DNA of 64,000 nt, taken from positions 186,001-250,000 of the forward strand of contig OW569365.1 of assembly GCA_937625935.1 (NCBI GenBank). Direction: 5' to 3'. The first letter of the stretch is position 1. Each line of letters begins with the position of its first letter. Origin of the DNA: Tetramitus jugosus (Eukaryota; Protista; Heterolobosea). Below the pieces are notes generated by a model. It worked only from the letters and a program-made list of their open reading frames with translations, searched no databases and was not told the DNA's origin. Made by a program: the position numbers and the translations under genes. This document shows positions 54,491 to 64,000 of the stretch, piece by piece.

Positions 54491-54599
54491 TGATGTCTAC
54501 ACATGTGATTAAAGTTGATTCAGATATTTCTGAAATGACGTTTTATTTACTTAAGAAGTTAGTTTGGTGATCATGGTTTGTCATGAGGTATCCGCCACC

Positions 54600-56144
54600 T
54601 TAAAAGAAGTTAGTAAAAGTTTGGTGAGCACTGCTTGCTCTCCTTCTCATCTTCTCCTGTTCCATTTGTTTGTTGAGCCCTGACATGTCCAGTAAGTCTG
54701 GAGAAACAGGTGCAGAACTCAAGGTTGCTTGTCCTCCTGGACCTGGTTGAAACTTGGTTGGTGTTCCTGTCGAATCAAATCTGATCATGTCAGGTATTAC
54801 CAATGGAGATTGAGAAGTGGTTGTGCTGGTGCACTGTAGCGGATCCATGGGGCTCTCTTCTTTGGCTTGAGCTGGCTTCTCATGGATTCGAACATTTCGA
54901 AGTGAAATTGCAGGAATGGATTTGGATCTTGTTCTCACATGATACGATCGGTTCTCCAATTTGTCTCTCTCCTGGAGCATTGTATCATCTTTTGCTTGTT
55001 TCTTGATTTGTAGTTCCTTGACAAGCTTGGAGAATTTCTTTTCTTCTAGTTCCTGATGCTTCAATTCATTCATAATGTCTGCATTCTTGTTGAGTGGCAA
55101 TTCATACACGCCACTCAACATTTCATTCTCTTGATTCTTTCCACCAAAGAAGAACAATCGATGATGCTCCGAATCATATCCACACACCATACCAACAGCC
55201 TTTGGCATATAATTACCGAAATAGGAGGTTAACTTTGTCCATTTGTTGCCCTGCGCCGTGTTGCAAACATACACGTGCTGATCATACTTTGTCCTGGATA
55301 GCAAGTCTCCACCACCAGCCACAAATATCAAATCATGTATGGCGTAGCTCACGTGACAACATCTCGCATGTGGTGTCGATCCACTCTGAATTTCTTTTCT
55401 CCATGTGAACATGTCCAAATCCACACTGTACATCTCATTGATTACATGTTGATCCTTGTATGAGTTTCCTGCGGTCAACCCTCCAAAAAGATACAATCGA
55501 TTGTGAACGAGAACACCAGAGTGACAACACAGTCTCTCTGGTTTATCTCTGGCACCAAACGTCTCTTGACACGACCATTCTCTCTTTTTAATGTCGAAAC
55601 GGAACAAGTCTCCAAAGAAGATTTGTTTGCCTTGAGAACCGCCAAATATCCATAGGAAATCATTGTAATAGACCATGCAACAAGCAGCTCTTGGATCAGG
55701 TGATACTCCAGTGCACTCCAAGTGATCCCATCTTTCTGCTTCTGTGTCAAAGACGTACATGCCGTTGAATACTGTGTGAGGTACATCCGTGTGCACTTGA
55801 TAACCTCCAAACACGTACACCTTGTTTCCAACGGCACAACAACAGGAGAGACATCGGGCACTGGGCACCTTTCCTGTCGATTTCAATTGACTCCACCTAC
55901 CAGTCTCAATATTAAATATATGAACATCTGAATGATTCTATAGATTGAGTAAGATACACAACAAAGATCGTTAGAAAAGTGAGACGGATTGCGAAAACTT
56001 TTTGAACTTCAGATAACTCAAACTTACTTTTCCGTTTGGTTTCATTCCCAAAAAAACATAAATGTTGTGACCAATGGTTGCGGCACAATGGTATACGAGT
56101 GGTCCTGGAGCAGATCCCACCTGCTTCACTTCGGTCAGATGCAT
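54600..56144 (-). CDS. Kelch-repeat protein; 2 exons, intron 55938-56027
   Basis: PxARxxH..YVFGG..W repeats; exon 1 MHLTEVKQVGSAPGPLVYHCAATIGHNIYVFLGMKPNGK splices in frame to NHSDVHIFNIETGRW. Confidence 0.85.
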
Positions 56145-56367
56145 TTTGTTGTTATGTTGATTCGCAAGAAAAGTGGAATATTTAGTCTCAAGTGGTTCTC
56201 TTTTACTTTATGAAATTTGGAGGTGAAACAAGAACCAGAGTCTTGTCTCTTCGAAAAAATAGTCACATACTTTTTTGATTGTAAAAATACAAAAATCGTA
56301 TTTTAGGAAGTCAACCGACATCCAAAAAAACCAGGTAATCTGAACTGGCAAGAACTCACAAAGTTGA

Positions 56368-57123
56368 TTAATGGCTCTCCAGAATCTCTGCGATCGACTT
56401 TAACAATATTGATTCTTTGGGCAGGGACGGGTCGACATGACAACGACACTCTGGACACTTGTGTGCCGAATCCATACATCGTTCAACACACTTCTTACAA
56501 TAAGAATGACCACAGTGGAGAGTAGTTGGTTGTTTAAAATTCTCAAAACATATTGGACATTCAAGGAGTTCGCCTATACTCTGTATCCTATCATCTTGCT
56601 TTTCGCTTTTGTGTAGAAGAATTGCGTAATCGCGTTTCTCTTGCATTTTATGGGCAATAGCTATTTGTGCTTTCAGTCCCTCCTGTGCTTGTTCCATTTG
56701 GTAGATCCTCTTTCTCAGGGTTGTGGTATTGTGTTTTAGCTGAGTAATTGTGTTTGTTAGCTGAGCAATCCTTATCTTCTGTTCCTTGTTAATGGTTGTC
56801 AATGATTCCACATAGGTTTCATATTCCTCACATTTCTCCTGTGACGCCTCACACTCCTCTTCTTTCTCCTGTAACAGAGATTGTAAATTAATATAATGGG
56901 ACACAGCAATGCTCTTTTCAATAACCATTTCCTTGAGCTGCAACAAAGAGTTCATTTGACTACACTGCTTCTTCAGTGTGATACATTCTTCTTCTTTCTC
57001 TTCCTTCTGTTGCAGCAATGACCAGCGAAGTTGCCCCAATTCCCGATACTGTCGCATGAGTGCATCAAGCGACTCTTGTTTGTTCTGCAACAAAGAGTTC
57101 ACTTGGCTGCACTGCTTCTTTAA
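56368..57123 (-). pseudogene. 3' part (coiled coil plus C3HC4 RING) of a RING E3 ligase gene interrupted by the transposon
   Basis: CPICFENF..LHCGHSYCKKC..CPECR; the frame runs LKKQCSQVNSLLQ from the TTAA at 57120-57123. Confidence 0.85.
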
Positions 57124-57138
57124 GGTGGCCGTCCACTG
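57124..57138 (+). repeat. Left terminal inverted repeat
   Basis: GGTGGCCGTCCACTG directly after TTAA. Confidence 0.88.
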
Positions 57139-57243
57139 AAGAAATCGTATAAATAGGAGAAATAGTCAATTTACCCATCGGATTTGTTCATTGATTTTTT
57201 TCATCTCAAAAAAACTTGAGAAACACATCAACTCGCTTTCCTA

Positions 57244-57986
57244 TTATAATGAATACTGCCTCATGGTTCTGTTGGTGTTGGTTGTGTCACAAATTGTCAC
57301 AGGAGACTGCGAAGGTGATGTGCCCGTGCACATTTCATTGTTGATGGATTCAGAAGAGGATATCTCTGTGATGTCCTCTGTTTCGTGAAGACCTCGCATC
57401 AGTTTCTCAAGATCGTTTGTTTCTTCCTCAGTGTTGTTGCTGCTGTTGTTCTCAACTTCCCTTGGTGTTTGTGTTTTTTAAGGGCATATCGTGAAGCTGC
57501 AAAAGAAGGATTTATATCCGTTGCACGTGCAATCTATTCAAACGCTCTATCGGAATTCCCCACTAAAGCCATACAACTTGATCATCTGAATCTTTGCCTC
57601 CCTCGTCTTCTCATCAGGTATATTCTTGACCCAACTACATCATTTGTCAACAACATCACATACACAATTATACTCAAAAACAACAAGTATGGGCAATTGC
57701 AGCTATATACATACTCTGGAACGAAAAATCTTGACTTCCTATCAATGTACTTTTGTGTCCGATTCACTAATCGTTCACTCATCAACTGTAAGCATTCTGA
57801 TTTTTCAACCCACCACAGTGTACACATCGGGCACTGTTGCATTCGACGATAACTTGACTTCACAATTGGCAGGCAACCCCGCAACCACCTTCTTCACACT
57901 ACAATTAAAAAACATATACAAAACAATAGTTTAACTTTACAAAAACATTCTTACAAATTGTAATACACAAAACAAAAAATACATAC
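57244..57986 (-). pseudogene. Decayed multi-exon coding remnant inside the element, possibly a continuation of the chromodomain gene
   Basis: GTATGT..TAG intron-like segments at 57899-57986 and 57635-57714 flanked by coding-like stretches with stops and frameshifts. Confidence 0.35.
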
Positions 57987-58007
57987 GCCTTTAACAAATC
58001 ATTCTGT

Positions 58008-58493
58008 TTATTGATTAACAACTCTCCACCCTCCAGGGACCAATTCAAATTGTTCCCATGAACATGTCAAGTAGAATCCCTTCCACTTCACATAACCATA
58101 CCAAGAACCATTTTGATACTTCCAATCCAGAACATCATCAATTTGATAGAACTGTCCATTGGAGGTGTAGTTTTGGTGAATGTGACAGTACTGGGTTCCA
58201 CGTTTCCTTTGCAATTTGCACGGTAAGCCTGACTTGCAAACGGCCAAACAGTATGAGTACAAATTGTCCATATAAGACCTTATTGTTGATAGATTATTGA
58301 CCATCGAAGATCGAAAATCCCGACACGTCAATACCAAATTCAACACATCTTCTACACCAAGGAACGAACCAACTAGATACACAAATAAATCAATATGTAT
58401 ATCGGTTATTCTTACTTTTCTTTTGACTCCAAACTTTACCAATTGTTGGTGTTGGTTATGTCTTCTTTTGGCGCCTTTTCCTTGTTTTCCCAT
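58008..58493 (-). CDS. Cargo protein (161 aa): basic NLS-like segment, F-box-like motif, CCCH-type Zn finger, chromodomain
   Basis: ITDIHIDLFVYLVGSFLGVEDVLNLVLTCRDFR; CLAVCKSGLPCKLQRKRGTQYCHIH; YQIDDVLDWKYQNGSWYGYVKWKGFYLTCSWE. Confidence 0.65.
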   Translation of the reverse strand: MGKQGKGAKRRHNQHQQLVKFGVKRKVRITDIHIDLFVYLVGSFLGVEDVLNLVLTCRDFRSSMVNNLSTIRSYMDNLYSYCLAVCKSGLPCKLQRKRGTQYCHIHQNYTSNGQFYQIDDVLDWKYQNGSWYGYVKWKGFYLTCSWEQFELVPGGWRVVNQ

Positions 58494-58502
58494 TTGTTCA
58501 TT

Positions 58503-58779
58503 GATTTTTTTCATCAAAAAAACTTGCAAAAAACAGAAAACAAACACTCTGAAGGACATCGTGAGAGCGAGTGACCTGATGATGAGTGTGAGTTTTCTGA
58601 CGTTTGTCAAATTCTGTCCTACTATTGATACCATTAGAGATTTTTTCATCAAAAAAACTTGCAAAAAACAGAAAACAAACACTCTGAAGGACATCGTGAA
58701 TGCGAGTGACCTGATGATGAGTGTGAGTTTTCTGATGTTTGTCAAATTCTGTCCTACTATTGATACCACCATTAGAGAG
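58503..58779. repeat. Tandem duplication of a ~135-bp unit (2 near-identical copies)
   Basis: TCATCAAAAAAACTTGC at 58511 and 58646; copies differ by a few substitutions and small indels. Confidence 0.92.
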
Positions 58780-59423
58780 GTGTTGAATTGTCCGATAACT
58801 TGAGTATTCAGATCTCATTGATGACACTTGCTCTTCAAACATATCCTGATAACACTGACGATGTCAACAAGATTATTAATAACATTGCTAGTCAATTGAA
58901 TAGCACTGCACTTGCTTCGAATGAAATTGTAGACATGTTGAAGCGATTGTTGTTGGTGCCACTCGAGTCATACAACAATGTGCTAACAGTTTTGAAGTTG
59001 GAGAAGTATGGTGATATTATTCATTCTCTTGGATATGAACAGAGAAAGTTTATTGCACTGAGCATTGTGAGATGCGCACTTGACAATGGACACAAGATTT
59101 CAACATTTGAACAAGTGAACAAACTGTTTGATTTGATTCGTCCACTGTTGAAGGATGAGGAAGACCAGACAACATTCTCACCTTCTGACGACTCACCAAT
59201 AGCTGCAACATTGCTCGAAGATTTCGAAGAAGAACAGAACTTGATTGCCAGATTGGTTCATTTGTTTGATAATAGCGATTCTGATCAATTGTTTAAAGTT
59301 TTGGCCGCAGCCAGAAAGCACTTTGGTCAGGGTGGTGTCAAGAGAATTCAATACACATTGGTACCGCTTGTATTCTCCTACTTGAAACTTGCTCAGAGAA
59401 TCTACAATGCACACTGCAAATAG
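58780..59423 (+). pseudogene. VPS35: Captured internal fragment of retromer subunit VPS35
   Basis: SIQISLMTLALQTYPD..LLLVPLESYNNVLTVLKL..EDFEEEQNLIARLVHL..ARKHFGQGGVKRIQYTLVPLVF; no ATG at its 5' boundary and lacks both termini of the ~800-aa protein. Confidence 0.85.
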
Positions 59424-59697
59424 ACACCTCTTGTCGACTCTCCATCTTTTTTGATTGATTTGGTTGTTGTTGTTGATGTTCGTTGTGCGACTTGTGTTTT
59501 TCGTTGTTGTTGTCGCGTTCAAGATTGGATAGATAGGTGGATATATTATAAAAAAATACAATAAATGTTGTATCAGTTTCCTCTAAGCTGCGGAATTGGT
59601 GCAGTTGTAAAAATTTCCGTTGAGACTGTCTTTACAACGGCAACGGCCATCTACCTCGGTTTAAAAAGCGCTGTCTTTTTCGCTGTTTGATTCATCT

Positions 59698-59750
59698 CAC
59701 ACAACAAATACAACACAACAAATACACCACACAACAAATACAATAACATT
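59698..59750 (+). promoter_or_regulatory. Three copies of CACAACAAATACA directly upstream of the Fanzor ATG
   Basis: Seen in sequence; A/C-rich leaders also precede host ATGs in this window. Confidence 0.4.
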
Positions 59751-61664
59751 ATGCCACGAGGCGTGCCTAAGGACGGTAAGAGAAAGAGAAAGAGAGAGAC
59801 TGTCAAAAAGAATGAATACTCATCACATTACGTGGTCAAGGTCGGTCTGAAGTCTCTGTTGTTGCATCATCCAACTCTGTTACCAATCATACAAACTCAA
59901 GCTCTGGAGATTACAAGGATTGCTCTTCGACTCACAAGATTTATAAACATATTTGTTTTGAGGCACTTGGAGAACAATTGTGATATCCCTCTCTTGAATC
60001 AAGGATTTATTCAACGAATCGGTTCAGTGTTGTTTGGACGCAAGTCGAAGACAAGAGACGATAATGTCAACCTCATCAACGGGTCAGTCAACATGGATGA
60101 CGTAATAATCAAGCTAAGGAAGATTTGTGAGAAGTTATCCAAATCCATCAATTACGTTGCCAAGTCTCTCAATGTCAATATTTCTAACATGCTCAAGTTC
60201 ACATTGGAACAAAGACTGAGAAAGTACTTGAGAGTGAGGATGGCTCAATTGCACAATGGTCAATCAATCCCCAGGTCTGAATACAGAAGAGTAGTAGAAT
60301 ACATCATCAGAAAGTTGACATTTGTCACTCCAGTTTATGATTTTGTCAAACTGCCTCCAAAAGAGTTGATAGAGACTATTCCTGTGTTGATCCAAGAGGT
60401 TCGAACATTTGTTGGTGCTGAAACCGACGAAGTGGTTGATGAATCGTTTGTGAACAACAACACCAATAACATGCTGAAGTTTTACTGGCATGTTCAACAG
60501 TTTCTGATTGTCAATGGAACAAAATCATTTGCATTGTTGCCCTTGTCCCACTTTAAATGTAGATGCATGGAGATAGGTACAACGGACCTGATAGACATGC
60601 TCCAACAGAAGAAGAAGGGAAATGTACAAGTAATTGAACCCATTGAATTGAAGTATAATCTCAAGTGTTTGAATGTTGGAACAAAGAAGATTCAAATCGA
60701 CTCAATCAGAACAGACGGTATTCAGGCCTCTGTTGTTCTCAGACATCAACTCGTTGGCATCCACAAGAACAATAAGGCAAAGGTATCCAAGGGCCAGAAA
60801 GAAGCAAAGAAGATGAAGAAAGAAGCAACTATTGTTGATCAAAATGCAGATTACTTGATTGGTATCGATCCTGGTATTGTCACATTGATGAGTTGTGCAG
60901 ATTCAGATGGTAAAAAGTGGGAGTTCTCCAATAAGGCATACAGACGACTGTCTCATCATTCACAGAACGCCAAACGTTTGTTGAAATACAAAGCAAAATG
61001 GAACACGAAAACTGGAAAAGATTTAGATGAACTCCATAACTCGATCAAACAAGCCAGTGTATCGACAAGTGATCTGTTTATCGAACACATTGATTCTGTT
61101 TTGAAAGTCGAAGATGACTTGCTTGGTTTTTATTGCACTCCAAAGGTGAAGAGACTGAATTGGGACAGCTATATTATGAGAGACAAAACAATTGCTGGAG
61201 TAATGAATGATTTTCACAAAAGAGCAAATGGAAGAAAGATGGTCATTGGCATGGGCAATGCTGGTTTCAAAAATAGTTACAGAGGACATGCTTCAACGCC
61301 CAAGGGCAAGCTGTTGAAGAAACTGAATGAACGATTTGAAGTGAAAATGATTGACGAATTCATGACCAGCCAAAAATGTTGTGCTTGCCATTCCCATTTG
61401 AAGCCAGTCAAGCACAAACGAATGGACAAGAAAGGTGTATCGGCAATCTCTATTGTACGAGGAGTTAAGCAGTGTGCAACCACTAAATGTTTAGTGACTC
61501 ACAACAGAGACATCAATGCGGCCAAGAACATGCTCCATCTACTGAGAACAGAAATGGATGGACAGTCACGTCCCAATGCCTTCAAGAGGAAGAAAAAGGT
61601 CGCAAAAGAATTAATCAAAATGGTGGAACACCTCCAAGGCTCACTCCATCAAGCTGCTATGTAA
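59751..61664 (+). CDS. Fanzor1-type RNA-guided endonuclease (eukaryotic TnpB relative), 637 aa, intact RuvC
   Basis: VVKVGLKSLL, FALLP, IRTDG; RuvC-I GIDPG (D373); GNAGF..GHASTP; shifted RuvC-II IDEFMTSQKCCAC (E536); C..C; RuvC-III NRDINAAKNM (D587); basic NLS-like KRKRKR and KRKKK. Confidence 0.92.
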   Translation: MPRGVPKDGKRKRKRETVKKNEYSSHYVVKVGLKSLLLHHPTLLPIIQTQALEITRIALRLTRFINIFVLRHLENNCDIPLLNQGFIQRIGSVLFGRKSKTRDDNVNLINGSVNMDDVIIKLRKICEKLSKSINYVAKSLNVNISNMLKFTLEQRLRKYLRVRMAQLHNGQSIPRSEYRRVVEYIIRKLTFVTPVYDFVKLPPKELIETIPVLIQEVRTFVGAETDEVVDESFVNNNTNNMLKFYWHVQQFLIVNGTKSFALLPLSHFKCRCMEIGTTDLIDMLQQKKKGNVQVIEPIELKYNLKCLNVGTKKIQIDSIRTDGIQASVVLRHQLVGIHKNNKAKVSKGQKEAKKMKKEATIVDQNADYLIGIDPGIVTLMSCADSDGKKWEFSNKAYRRLSHHSQNAKRLLKYKAKWNTKTGKDLDELHNSIKQASVSTSDLFIEHIDSVLKVEDDLLGFYCTPKVKRLNWDSYIMRDKTIAGVMNDFHKRANGRKMVIGMGNAGFKNSYRGHASTPKGKLLKKLNERFEVKMIDEFMTSQKCCACHSHLKPVKHKRMDKKGVSAISIVRGVKQCATTKCLVTHNRDINAAKNMLHLLRTEMDGQSRPNAFKRKKKVAKELIKMVEHLQGSLHQAAM

Positions 61665-61773
61665 GTCCCGATTATGTAGGAGCGTTAAGGTGTCTTATCG
61701 GGAAATCATAATTTTTTTATTATGGTTTGATCGACAGTGGACCGCCACCTTAAGGTGACACATTCTTCTTCTT
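61665..61773 (+). ncRNA. Predicted Fanzor omegaRNA: scaffold ~61665-61753 plus guide from flanking DNA (61754-~61773)
   Basis: Stem TCCCGAT/ATCGGGA (61666-72/61697-703); stem AAATCATAAT/ATTATGGTTT (61703-12/61719-28); loop TTAAGGTG (61685-92) complementary to CACCTTAA (61746-53). Confidence 0.7.
61735..61749 (-). repeat. Right terminal inverted repeat
   Basis: CAGTGGACCGCCACC followed by TTAA. Confidence 0.88.
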
Positions 61774-62008
61774 TCACTTGATGAACATGTTCCAAAGCTT
61801 GGTACCGTTTCTCCCACCAGAGGCATTTCCCTTCTTTCTCCCGTTCCAACATAAACAAACGTATATATTCCCTATCCAAAGATAGATACTGTTCTTGCAT
61901 CGTATCATAAATGAGCTTTGCTATCCCTAAAATCACAAATATTGTGATCCACAAAAAAATTGTCAAACCTGATGGAGGATTCTCAGTTGTTTGCAGATCG
62001 GGTACCAT
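61750..62008 (-). pseudogene. 5' part (TM helix and start of coiled coil) of the interrupted RING gene
   Basis: MVPDLQ..LTIFLWITIFVILGIAKLIY..VKEEECVTL joins KKQCSQVNSLLQ, matching the internal repeat EEECITLKKQCSQMNSLLQ. Confidence 0.85.
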
Positions 62009-62097
62009 TTGAAGTTGTTGTTTGATCGAATTTTGAGGGTTCCTTCATCTTTAGCAAAAGAAAACTACGACATGTCACGCAACGATGGATAAAATTT

Positions 62098-64000
62098 TTA
62101 TACTGCTTCAAAGAGTTCTGCCCATTTCTTCTGCAATTCACCAAAGTCATCCACAATCTCCTGAATCTCTTTCACACGTCTCACAATTCTCAATCTCCTT
62201 CCCTTGGCTTTGATGTTGAACTTTTCTTCCCACGTTGATTCACAGTCTCCACTAATCGAGAGCAAATCTTTCACAGTTTCGATGCATTCCTCCTCAAATA
62301 CAGAGAAGATGGTTTCAAGTCCTTCAGGTTTGTCTTCCCCGGCCTCTGAATCCTCAGTTCCATTGGTTGTACTCTCCTTCTTGACAGGAGTAGACACTTC
62401 TGTCCACCACTTGTATTCATTATTCAAATCCAAAATCCAATCTTTGGCCTTTTGCATTGCCTTCTTTGGACAATAATCGAACAGATCGGTATTCTCATCC
62501 AACTTTGGACACACTTCACCAGTATAAATGTTAATGAGATCTTGTGGAGATGGTACTTCCAGATGATGATTAGGTGGGTTGATCAAATGTTCGTCCACCT
62601 TACTCAACAGCTCCTCCAAAACGTCTACTCTCTTGTCAGCAGTACTTGTATAGTATCTTTGCTTGAAAATGTTGAGGAATTGTTTTAACTCCATAAAACT
62701 GATATCTAACTTAGAAACAGACCCAACCAATCTCTTAACAATGACATCAGGCACATCGACAAAATGGAACTTGAATAATCTCTTGACTTCAGCTGGTGTA
62801 ACAAGTTGGAAATCTGCCATAGCAGCCTTCTCGTTGCTCAAGACATCAGTAATTCTGTTTATATCAGCAGAAGCAGACACACCATTCTGAGTAAAGAGTT
62901 GAGTGGAAGGCTTTGCGCCCAAGTCAAGCACTGTCTTAACTCTGTTCTTCTTGAATGCTTGAATTTGTCTTGCAAATCCAAGACGTTTCAACCACTCTTC
63001 AATTGTAACAGCCGAAATGTTACGCTCCTCCAGTGTATATTGTCGAATGCGCTTAATGAATCCATCCTTCACATTCTCAATACTACCTTCAGGATCTCTC
63101 TTGAATCTGCTAAGATGAGAAAGAATTTGAGCCATGGTCAATTGTTCTCCCTCAGTTTCAAGAGCAACACAAAATCGTTCTGCTTGCTCTTCGGTCGCGT
63201 TCTTATAGAAATGAAGGAAAGCTCCCTTCATCTGTTGTCTTGTAGCATAGGTGAACTCTACCTTGACATCGCAACGTCCAGGCCGTATCAATGCAGGATC
63301 CAGACGTTCAATATGATTGGTAGTCATAAAAAGCAGACGACCAGATTCAGGAGCAGCGATACCATCAATAGAATTAAGCAGTCCAGCAAATGTCACAGAT
63401 CTCTTGTTCTTGTTGGCATCCGGTGTGTTTCTATTCGTGAAAACAGCATCAATGTCCTCCAAAAGGATAACACTTCTTGGAGGAGCAGATTGCATTCTCT
63501 GAGCCAATTCTTCATCACCAATCAATCCACTAGACAAATCCAAGACACAGATATTGAGGTTCAATCTCGATGCAAGCGCAGAGACGAAACTGGACTTACC
63601 TATAAAAGTAAAACAACAAGCAACAGGTTAGAGACCAACAACAATACACAACCAAATAGAACAATAAAAAAATTTCAATACATACCTGTACCCGGAAGGC
63701 CATACAGGAGATATCCTCTTCTGAATGGAATTCCCTTTTCTCTGTACCACTCTTTTCTCTTCAAGAACTGAACAGCATCATCTGATAGTTTCTCTGCTAG
63801 ATCCTTGTCCAAGATCACAGATCCAAAAGGTCTCTTATTCTTTGCGAGTGCCAATGTCCAACCACCCCACTGTTGAGCCACATAGATTCTCACAACATCA
63901 CAGCTGTTGGCCATGGTTGACTTCATTGCTTCTTCAAACAAGTCCAATAGAATTTGTCGATTGCTCATCGACTTCATCGTACCAAACATGTTGAGAGACA
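62098..64000 (-). CDS. BCS1-like AAA ATPase with C-terminal SAM-like domains; 5' end outside the window; intron 63600-63685
   Basis: KRPFGSVILD, WYREKGIPFRRGYLLYGLPGTG|KSS, ILLEDIDA, VTFAGLLNSIDG, MTTNHIERLDPALIRPGRCD; TIEEWLKRLGF SAM-like. Confidence 0.85.

Follow-up and report, generated by a model that had tools for sequence, protein, structure and literature searches.

A young Fanzor1-carrying TTAA transposon with Pack-type cargo in a RING-finger gene of Tetramitus jugosus

The protist Tetramitus jugosus has few introns and occurs in groundwater, springs and soil. Within a stretch of 64,000 nucleotides of its contig OW569365.1 (hereafter the window), positions 57124-61749 are occupied by a 4.63-kb mobile element that interrupts a RING-finger gene. 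The element is real, and its identification as a young, non-autonomous transposon that inserts at TTAA and bears a Fanzor1 gene along with Pack-type cargo is well supported. It displays the characteristic features of a non-autonomous DNA transposon with terminal inverted repeats (TIRs), including the TIRs themselves, a target-site duplication (TSD), insertions at several sites and an empty site, and neither a domain search nor a check of its reading frames revealed a transposase domain inside it.

Insertion site, empty alleles and further copies

The element is delimited by 15-bp TIRs, the left one starting with GG (57124-57138, plus strand) and the right one ending with CC (61735-61749, minus strand), which agree at 14 of 15 positions. 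Each abuts a TTAA target-site copy (57120-57123 and 61750-61753). Among the 15,225 pairs of TTAA sites in the whole window, about 0.001 TTAA-flanked inverted pairs with no more than one mismatch are expected by chance, and one was observed. The single mismatch is a feature of the family rather than a sign of decay, since the same base occurs in the left ends of L004 and L022 (contigs carrying further copies), where the left TIR sequence is identical. Other left ends also follow TTAA (L004 and a loose end in run X10), and the last 9 nt of the right TIR are the same in L001, L019 and L020.

The interrupted gene lies on the minus strand. Its 5' part (61754-62008) comprises 85 codons with one strong hydrophobic segment, and its 3' part (56368-57123) encodes coiled-coil repeats and a C3HC4 RING (Pfam zf-C3HC4_2, E 9e-10). 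A script check revealed that excising 4630 bases produces a single frame of 1011 nt (336 aa) with only a terminal stop, the rejoined protein having the hydrophobic segment near its start, followed by the coiled-coil repeats and the RING. At the excision junction, 63 of 81 nt are identical to the internal repeat of the gene. Both halves remain open, which fits a recent insertion. Database searches with the two halves separately found no homologue of this gene, so that a putative E3 activity is deduced from its RING domain.

Contigs from public DNA and RNA runs were mapped onto positions 56300-62200 of the window (5,901 letters). The empty RING allele was found in a groundwater DNA run (X4), where a 686-nt contig, about 2% divergent from the window, skips exactly 4630 bases with 255 nt on its short side, and in a soil RNA run (X15), where an RNA contig skips the same 4630 bases. 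The filled right junction is spanned by contig 21 of X2, a sample of the same organism, and further contigs track the element as far as its TTAA before diverging into unrelated DNA. A pattern scan of metagenomes identified 11 further termini, ten of them right ends and one a left end, all at different sites, and only TTAA is common to the flanks of these other copies; it was present at 10 of the 12 junctions detected without requiring TTAA. A second filled/empty pair is formed by L008 and by L052 from another sample, the latter having a single TTAA at the insertion point. Right ends exceeded left ends 10:1 in the pattern scan, and contig depth, a rough measure, also indicated an excess of right ends.

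These results largely bear out an earlier, sequence-only reading of the window. The positions and sequences that it gave for the TIRs and TTAA flanks were as stated on recheck, and its claims that removal of 57124-61753 restores one 336-aa frame and recreates a copy of the gene's internal repeat were both reproduced. The recovery of copies that have these termini in different surroundings, together with the empty allele that it had predicted, now found in one DNA and one RNA run, supports its description of the element as young, non-autonomous and TTAA-specific, and its statement that no transposase lies inside holds for all domain matches and frames of the element.

Two side observations concern the insertion sites. 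In all 11 junction contigs considered (L004, L006-L010, L012-L015 and L017), a host open reading frame (ORF) faces the element and ends 3-89 nt away, TTAA containing the host stop codon in three of them; this apparent bias to gene 3' ends was not used, because junction contigs may be transcript assemblies. GG was slightly over-represented after the right TTAA (4/18, P 0.006), a post hoc result that was likewise left aside.

The contig L001 harbours a complete cargo-free relative of 2166 bp (399-2564) with the same terminal 10 nt, flanked by TCAA on its left and TTAA on its right. It sits in a gene-dense contig with virus-like genes, a context in which host-virus transfer is possible. Two contigs of the same sample, L002 (2437-4521) and L003 (1631-3862), encode Fanzors that are 63-64% identical, lack matching TIRs and possess a conserved 3' end of another kind, covering about 35 nt after the stop; judging from these sequences, the same Fanzor clade probably resides there in another carrier. 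A giant-virus origin of the L001-L003 contigs is plausible but not shown. In L006 (1031-1171) and L013 (2-135), internal deletions join the right end to mid-Fanzor and the closing TTAAGG is lost, a structure resembling ghost-like derivatives. The Fanzor copies of L051 and L020 are near-identical to the window at their ends and about 87% alike overall, a pattern that, together with the many joints inside the Fanzor gene in X2, suggests mosaic copies arising from gene conversion between subfamilies.

Fanzor1 protein, predicted right-end RNA and cargo

The Fanzor gene (59751-61664, plus strand) encodes 637 aa without introns, and its sequence and modelled structure identify an intact Fanzor1. Assignment to Fanzor1 was based on a RuvC domain with a DPG motif, a shifted glutamate about 6 residues ahead of a C4 zinc finger, and an RD motif. 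All were found (D373-P-G, E536, C543/C546/C575/C580 and R586-D587), the RuvC triad D373/E536/D587 and the zinc finger being intact. The protein falls in the Fanzor1 size class (600-700 aa, with an enlarged REC), and sequence searches match it to SpuFz1. A structure model built from 82 sequences had a predicted local distance difference test (pLDDT) score of 91 and was used, a model from six sequences (pLDDT 41) being discarded. Its best fold match was again SpuFz1 (Foldseek, E 1e-25), with TM values of 0.71 for SpuFz1, 0.66 for PpFz1, 0.60 for GtFz1 and 0.21 for the mimivirus Fanzor2; the three Fanzor1 folds are thus far ahead of Fanzor2 or TnpB. An IS607EU/Fanzor2 identity, which implies a serine recombinase, the absence of a TSD and a Fanzor2 protein, did not agree with the domain search and Foldseek results and was rejected. 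The ratio of non-synonymous to synonymous substitutions (dN/dS) against two relatives was 0.12-0.15, indicating purifying selection, and this holds also against L020. The clade is small, with five proteins at 59-85% identity before a fall to about 30%, a handful among billions of proteins. The stop codon lies 85 nt from the right terminus, in line with the proximity noted by the sequence-only reading, whose view of the Fanzor as the only long intact ORF needs a small correction: a Vps35 fragment of 200-211 aa and a 158-aa ORF on the minus strand are also open.

In Fanzor1 systems, the TIR and TSD are part of the RNA scaffold, and the RNA extends about 15 nt further (PMC10711439, PMC10432273). 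By prediction, a structured right-end RNA taking in both TIR and TSD also occurs here. The putative omegaRNA scaffold (61653-61753, plus strand) comprises a 5' hairpin, a long central hairpin and a closing helix, in which the CC at the terminus and the TTAA duplicate offer pairing partners for an internal TTAAGG (61685-61690), so that the scaffold is predicted to finish with the right target-site copy. Compared with shuffled sequences, the final 100 nt have the better fold (z -3.0 in the window, -3.9 in L001 and -5.2 in L019), the hairpin layout is the same in the window and in divergent relatives, and double (compensatory) changes affect 6 of the 11 pairs of the 5' hairpin. The closing-helix pairs are invariant in seven aligned rows, and the helix is unchanged even in L024, which has 43% protein identity and another TIR interior; the closing pairing is not always present in the lowest-energy fold of L001, L020 and L024. 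A search of Rfam returned no match for the right-end RNA. By analogy with known systems, the right end is predicted to encode an omegaRNA-like scaffold closed by a helix with TTAA. The predicted guide (61754-61768, plus strand), positioned by the same analogy (PMC10711439, PMC10432273), derives from the host flank and has its match in the empty allele immediately behind TTAA, and the left TTAA would represent the core of the target-adjacent motif (TAM).

The element has captured 640 nt from the interior of the host's Vps35 gene (58774-59413, plus strand; Pfam Vps35, E 1e-43, profile positions 330-526 of 726), with an open frame at 58788-59423. RNA contigs match this piece, leave the element at both its limits and extend at least 255 letters further, which means that it differs very little from the host gene. 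The same fragment is found at the same place in L021, L022 and L051, with 4-6 differences in 603 nt, indicating a single capture followed by amplification. In X15, the depth of RNA contigs over the tandem repeat described below and the Vps35 cargo (58467-59450) is far above that over the Fanzor ORF, contig depth being a measure that cannot rank expression; this cargo may be transcribed from many copies.

The 158-aa cargo ORF (58008-58484, minus strand) exhibits weak F-box-like, CCCH finger and chromo-like matches (Pfam, E 0.002-0.3) and an Atlas lead (0.78) to giant-virus F-box clusters. Protein searches found no homologue outside copies of the element, and a shorter subfamily keeps only its first 59%. 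Two further regions are subfamily features. The segment 57272-58202 contains decayed coding remnants with frames full of stops, and is replaced in many copies by a short stretch, the joint 57271-58203 occurring in X4, X10 and X15 and the short version also in L004 and L022. A 135-bp tandem duplication (58506-58768, plus strand; 97% alike) is present in the window copy and not in L021, L022 or L051. At 57182-57227 (minus strand), a copy of the motif preceding the cargo ORF start faces out of the left end (repeats D7 and D14). Outside the element, a BCS1-like AAA ATPase gene with a SAM-like extension (62098-63995, minus strand) lies directly upstream of the RING gene, and a single frame with abundant cysteine repeats stays open for about 6,900 codons at 10997-31909 (minus strand).

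Probable mobilisation, proposed homing and alternative explanations

Kolobok transposons are defined by a TTAA duplication and 5'-RR...YY-3' termini, whereas piggyBac termini are YY..RR (PMC9587614). Here, the TSD is a 4-bp TTAA, a TA reading being formally still compatible, and GG..CC termini were found in all copies and relatives. The CC-TTAA end persists even in relatives whose protein identity is as low as 43%, with the outer T and A of TTAA as constant as the inner TA. All KolobokP consensus ends examined start with G and end with CC, and KolobokP-6, -N2 and -N4_CGi share the starting hexamer GGTGGC with the element. These termini point to the Kolobok superfamily, which is not included among the Fanzor carriers of a 2026 review (Mariner, Sola2, MuDR, Harbinger, Helitron, Crypton, hAT, EnSpm and piggyBac; PMC13565253). 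PiggyBac was rejected on its YY..RR termini; hAT or P elements, with their 8-bp TSD, were rejected because the 8-nt repeat is site-specific and the flanks of other copies differ after TTAA. The earlier preference for Kolobok over piggyBac thus gains from the published end rule and the terminal hexamer, but is still inferred from ends. A TA duplication with AGG..CCT ends, held at that time to be equally consistent, is formally possible but less likely.

We consider it probable, with some reserve, that this is a young cut-and-paste transposon with Kolobok-type ends, moved in trans and subject to restorative homing by its Fanzor. The element inserts at TTAA, duplicates it, has reached a high copy number and differs in its presence between samples. 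The enzyme moving it in trans would be a DDE transposase specific for TTAA, with the Kolobok superfamily as its most likely source. Fanzor1 would bind the right-end RNA, in which a scaffold terminating in the TTAA duplicate would be followed by a final 14-15 nt supplied by the host flank, and would cut TTAA followed by the matching flank, namely the empty allele or the excised site, an activity suggested by work on SpuFz1 and SfAV. Repair from a filled copy would then restore the element, and incomplete repair would generate 5'-truncated right ends. Such restorative homing would keep a passenger nuclease under purifying selection. The Vps35 piece and the small ORF would be Pack-type passengers, acquired once and copied with the family, and the window copy would have recently disrupted one allele of the RING gene.

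A degenerate remnant located about 2.5 kb from the element (54551-54627, plus strand), at a TTAA forming the stop codon of a Kelch gene, may be relevant to this model. It is composed of an imperfect copy of TTAA and flank, 29 nt ending like the right end, TTAA, and the flank. Its 12-nt exact match to the right terminus compares with three matches in the window for 0.22 expected, the 17 nt ahead of it partly resemble the right end, and ahead of those is an imperfect copy of TTAA and 24 nt of the following flank, with no equal score at 2000 random places. SpuFz1 cuts 16-21 nt past the TAM. If a Fanzor cut an empty site, and only the far end copied from the filled allele before rejoining, the product would run from TTAA through a portion of the guide target and a right end truncated on its 5' side to a second TTAA and the full flank, which is the layout of the remnant; one-ended homing would also explain the excess of right ends. 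Truncated copies surrounded by variable-length duplications, resembling the remnant, are known for CRe-1 (PMC3627910). The remnant, which is old and imperfect, is possibly a footprint of aborted homing, or else a duplication of unrelated origin.

A number of observations weigh against this scenario. A metagenome TIR scan yielded 11 real ends and four prokaryotic chance matches without any partner transposase, a TIR scan of viral contigs gave only chance matches in prophage genes, again without a partner, and a protein-based scan of viral contigs found none either. A TIR search of the kind suggested by the sequence-only reading, made here in metagenomes and viral contigs, thus recovered other copies at other sites but no transposase-encoding member with the same TIRs, and the element is best described as having Kolobok-type ends rather than as being a Kolobok. 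Two junctions deviate from TTAA, with TCAA in L001 and TTCA in one X15 contig. The invariance of the closing helix means that covariation cannot prove its pairing, and the Fanzor ORF is almost without coverage in the X15 RNA run. The filled right junction also consists of TTAA and a full guide match, so that the TAM has to include bases ahead of TTAA if the element is to escape its own nuclease. A or T precedes the left TTAA at 5/5 sites, and C always precedes the TTAA of the right junction, which is suggestive only (P 0.11), and a C precedes TTAA in the 54.5-kb remnant, counter to this pattern.

The same element and Fanzor biology could be combined with a different mobiliser, of the IS630/Tc1/mariner type (TA, AGG..CCT, with a TTAA preference), piggyBac/Sola3-like, or belonging to the insect-virus TTAN family, an option that we regard as rather unlikely. 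TTAA and T-TA-A are indistinguishable from insertion data alone, SpuFz1, the closest characterised Fanzor, resides in TA-flanked elements, and unclassified TTAN elements with 13-bp TIRs exist. GG ends also occur in several superfamilies. However, families sharing 43-79% protein identity all retain the four TTAA bases despite changes inside the TIR, and both deviant junctions alter the inner dinucleotide with the outer bases intact. The termini of piggyBac have the opposite polarity, the known TTAA Fanzor element MCi-3 starts with CAGG, and Sola3 elements have GAG ends. Less probable still is a real element with a real end RNA and no homing in this host, the Fanzor being a passenger from a recent horizontal arrival (e.g., from giant viruses) or having another role, such as viral DNA cutting or gene regulation, and the truncated ends being ordinary deletions. 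The closest Fanzor relatives (64-79%) on gene-dense, virus-like metagenome contigs (L001-L003), the L002/L003 Fanzors wholly without these ends, the low RNA coverage in X15 and the self-target problem would agree with such a history, but purifying selection was also detected against L020, a near-identical end of the same family, the position and fold of the scaffold are conserved and end exactly at the TSD, and the remnant has the layout predicted by one-ended homing. An assembly artefact, chance repeats or a hAT-like 8-bp duplication (TTAAGGTG) instead of a 4-bp one is scarcely credible: eight letters do fit either side of the joint and no single contig spans the whole element, but both the filled right junction and the empty allele were recovered, the L008/L052 pair is independent of the RING gene, and the TIR pair far exceeds its chance expectation, with only TTAA shared by other flanks.

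Restorative homing in eukaryotes is a model that has not been demonstrated (PMC10432273, PMC13565253). The most far-reaching possibility, which we put forward tentatively and with more doubt than confidence, is that no OMEGA element mobilised by Kolobok was known before this one, that it is currently active in a cultured, widespread protist, and that the host genome holds natural footprints of Fanzor cutting and one-ended homing, in which TTAA and the initial part of the guide are duplicated on the two sides of a 5'-truncated right end. If so, these footprints would show directly, in vivo, a transposon being spread by its eukaryotic Fanzor, and the Kolobok link, if it holds, would add a new carrier superfamily for Fanzor. 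The family is well suited to a homing test: its nuclease is intact, its guide and target can be read, existing samples contain both the filled and the empty allele of named sites, and young copies are numerous, with candidate repair footprints in addition. It also offers a new compact Fanzor1 lineage with a predictable AT-rich TAM, and a filled junction keeping TTAA and target raises a sharp question of self versus non-self.

Relation to known Fanzor carriers and Pack-type elements

Spu-1/SpuFz1 of Spizellomyces punctatus (PMC10432273; PDB 8gkh) shares with the present element the Fanzor1 fold and size, an intron-free single ORF between TIRs, the absence of a transposase, a scaffold of about 75-100 nt over the right TIR with a guide from the flank, and ghost-like derivatives. 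The CATA around its TA is a parallel to a TAM extending before TTAA. The two Fanzors have about 19-25% protein identity, and Spu-1 has a TA duplication and 30-nt inverted repeats, in contrast to the TTAA, 15-nt GG..CC TIRs and 2.4 kb of captured cargo found here.

The Fanzor1 elements of insect viruses (HAmv-1, SFav-1, HVav-1, HAgv-1 and PUgv-1; PMC3627910; PMC10711439) are also non-autonomous, with short TIRs, a 4-bp TTAA/TTAN duplication and a TSD predicted inside the RNA scaffold. Their superfamily has been left unassigned for want of a transposase (PMC3627910; PMC10711439). They differ in being viral, present in 1-5 copies, about 1.95 kb long and cargo-free, with a looser TTAN target, and their Fanzors have an N-terminal zinc knuckle that is absent here. 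MCi-3 of Mucor circinelloides and the Repbase piggyBac-Fanzor entries (PMC3627910; PMC13565253) are likewise TTAA-flanked TIR elements with a Fanzor1, but MCi-3 has a pyrimidine end, a 39-bp TIR and a 1304-aa protein.

Kolobok elements, reported from protists including Naegleria, have the TTAA duplication, RR..YY termini and short imperfect TIRs seen here (PMC9587614), whereas no Kolobok transposase lies in or near the element, and KolobokP's long terminal direct repeats are absent. The Chlamydomonas Fanzor Helitrons CRe-1,2,3 (PMC3627910) also exhibit an excess of 3' ends, and have 5'-truncated copies between variable-length duplications starting at the target motif, of which one degenerate example was tested here. 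They differ by their Helitron ends and TTTT target, in contrast to a TIR element. Pack-MULEs and other Pack-type elements are non-autonomous TIR elements with near-identical host gene fragments, as here; to this design, the present element adds an RNA-guided nuclease and a TTAA target. The sequence-only reading had not recognised the combination of TIRs, Fanzor and cargo as described. Transposase-less TTAA/TTAN Fanzor1 TIR elements were in fact reported in 2013, and their general design, with a 4-bp TTAA/TTAN duplication, is already known from insect viruses and Mucor (PMC3627910). What is new in T. jugosus is the scale and youth of the family and its polymorphic empty sites, together with what are probably Kolobok-type ends and possibly footprints of homing.

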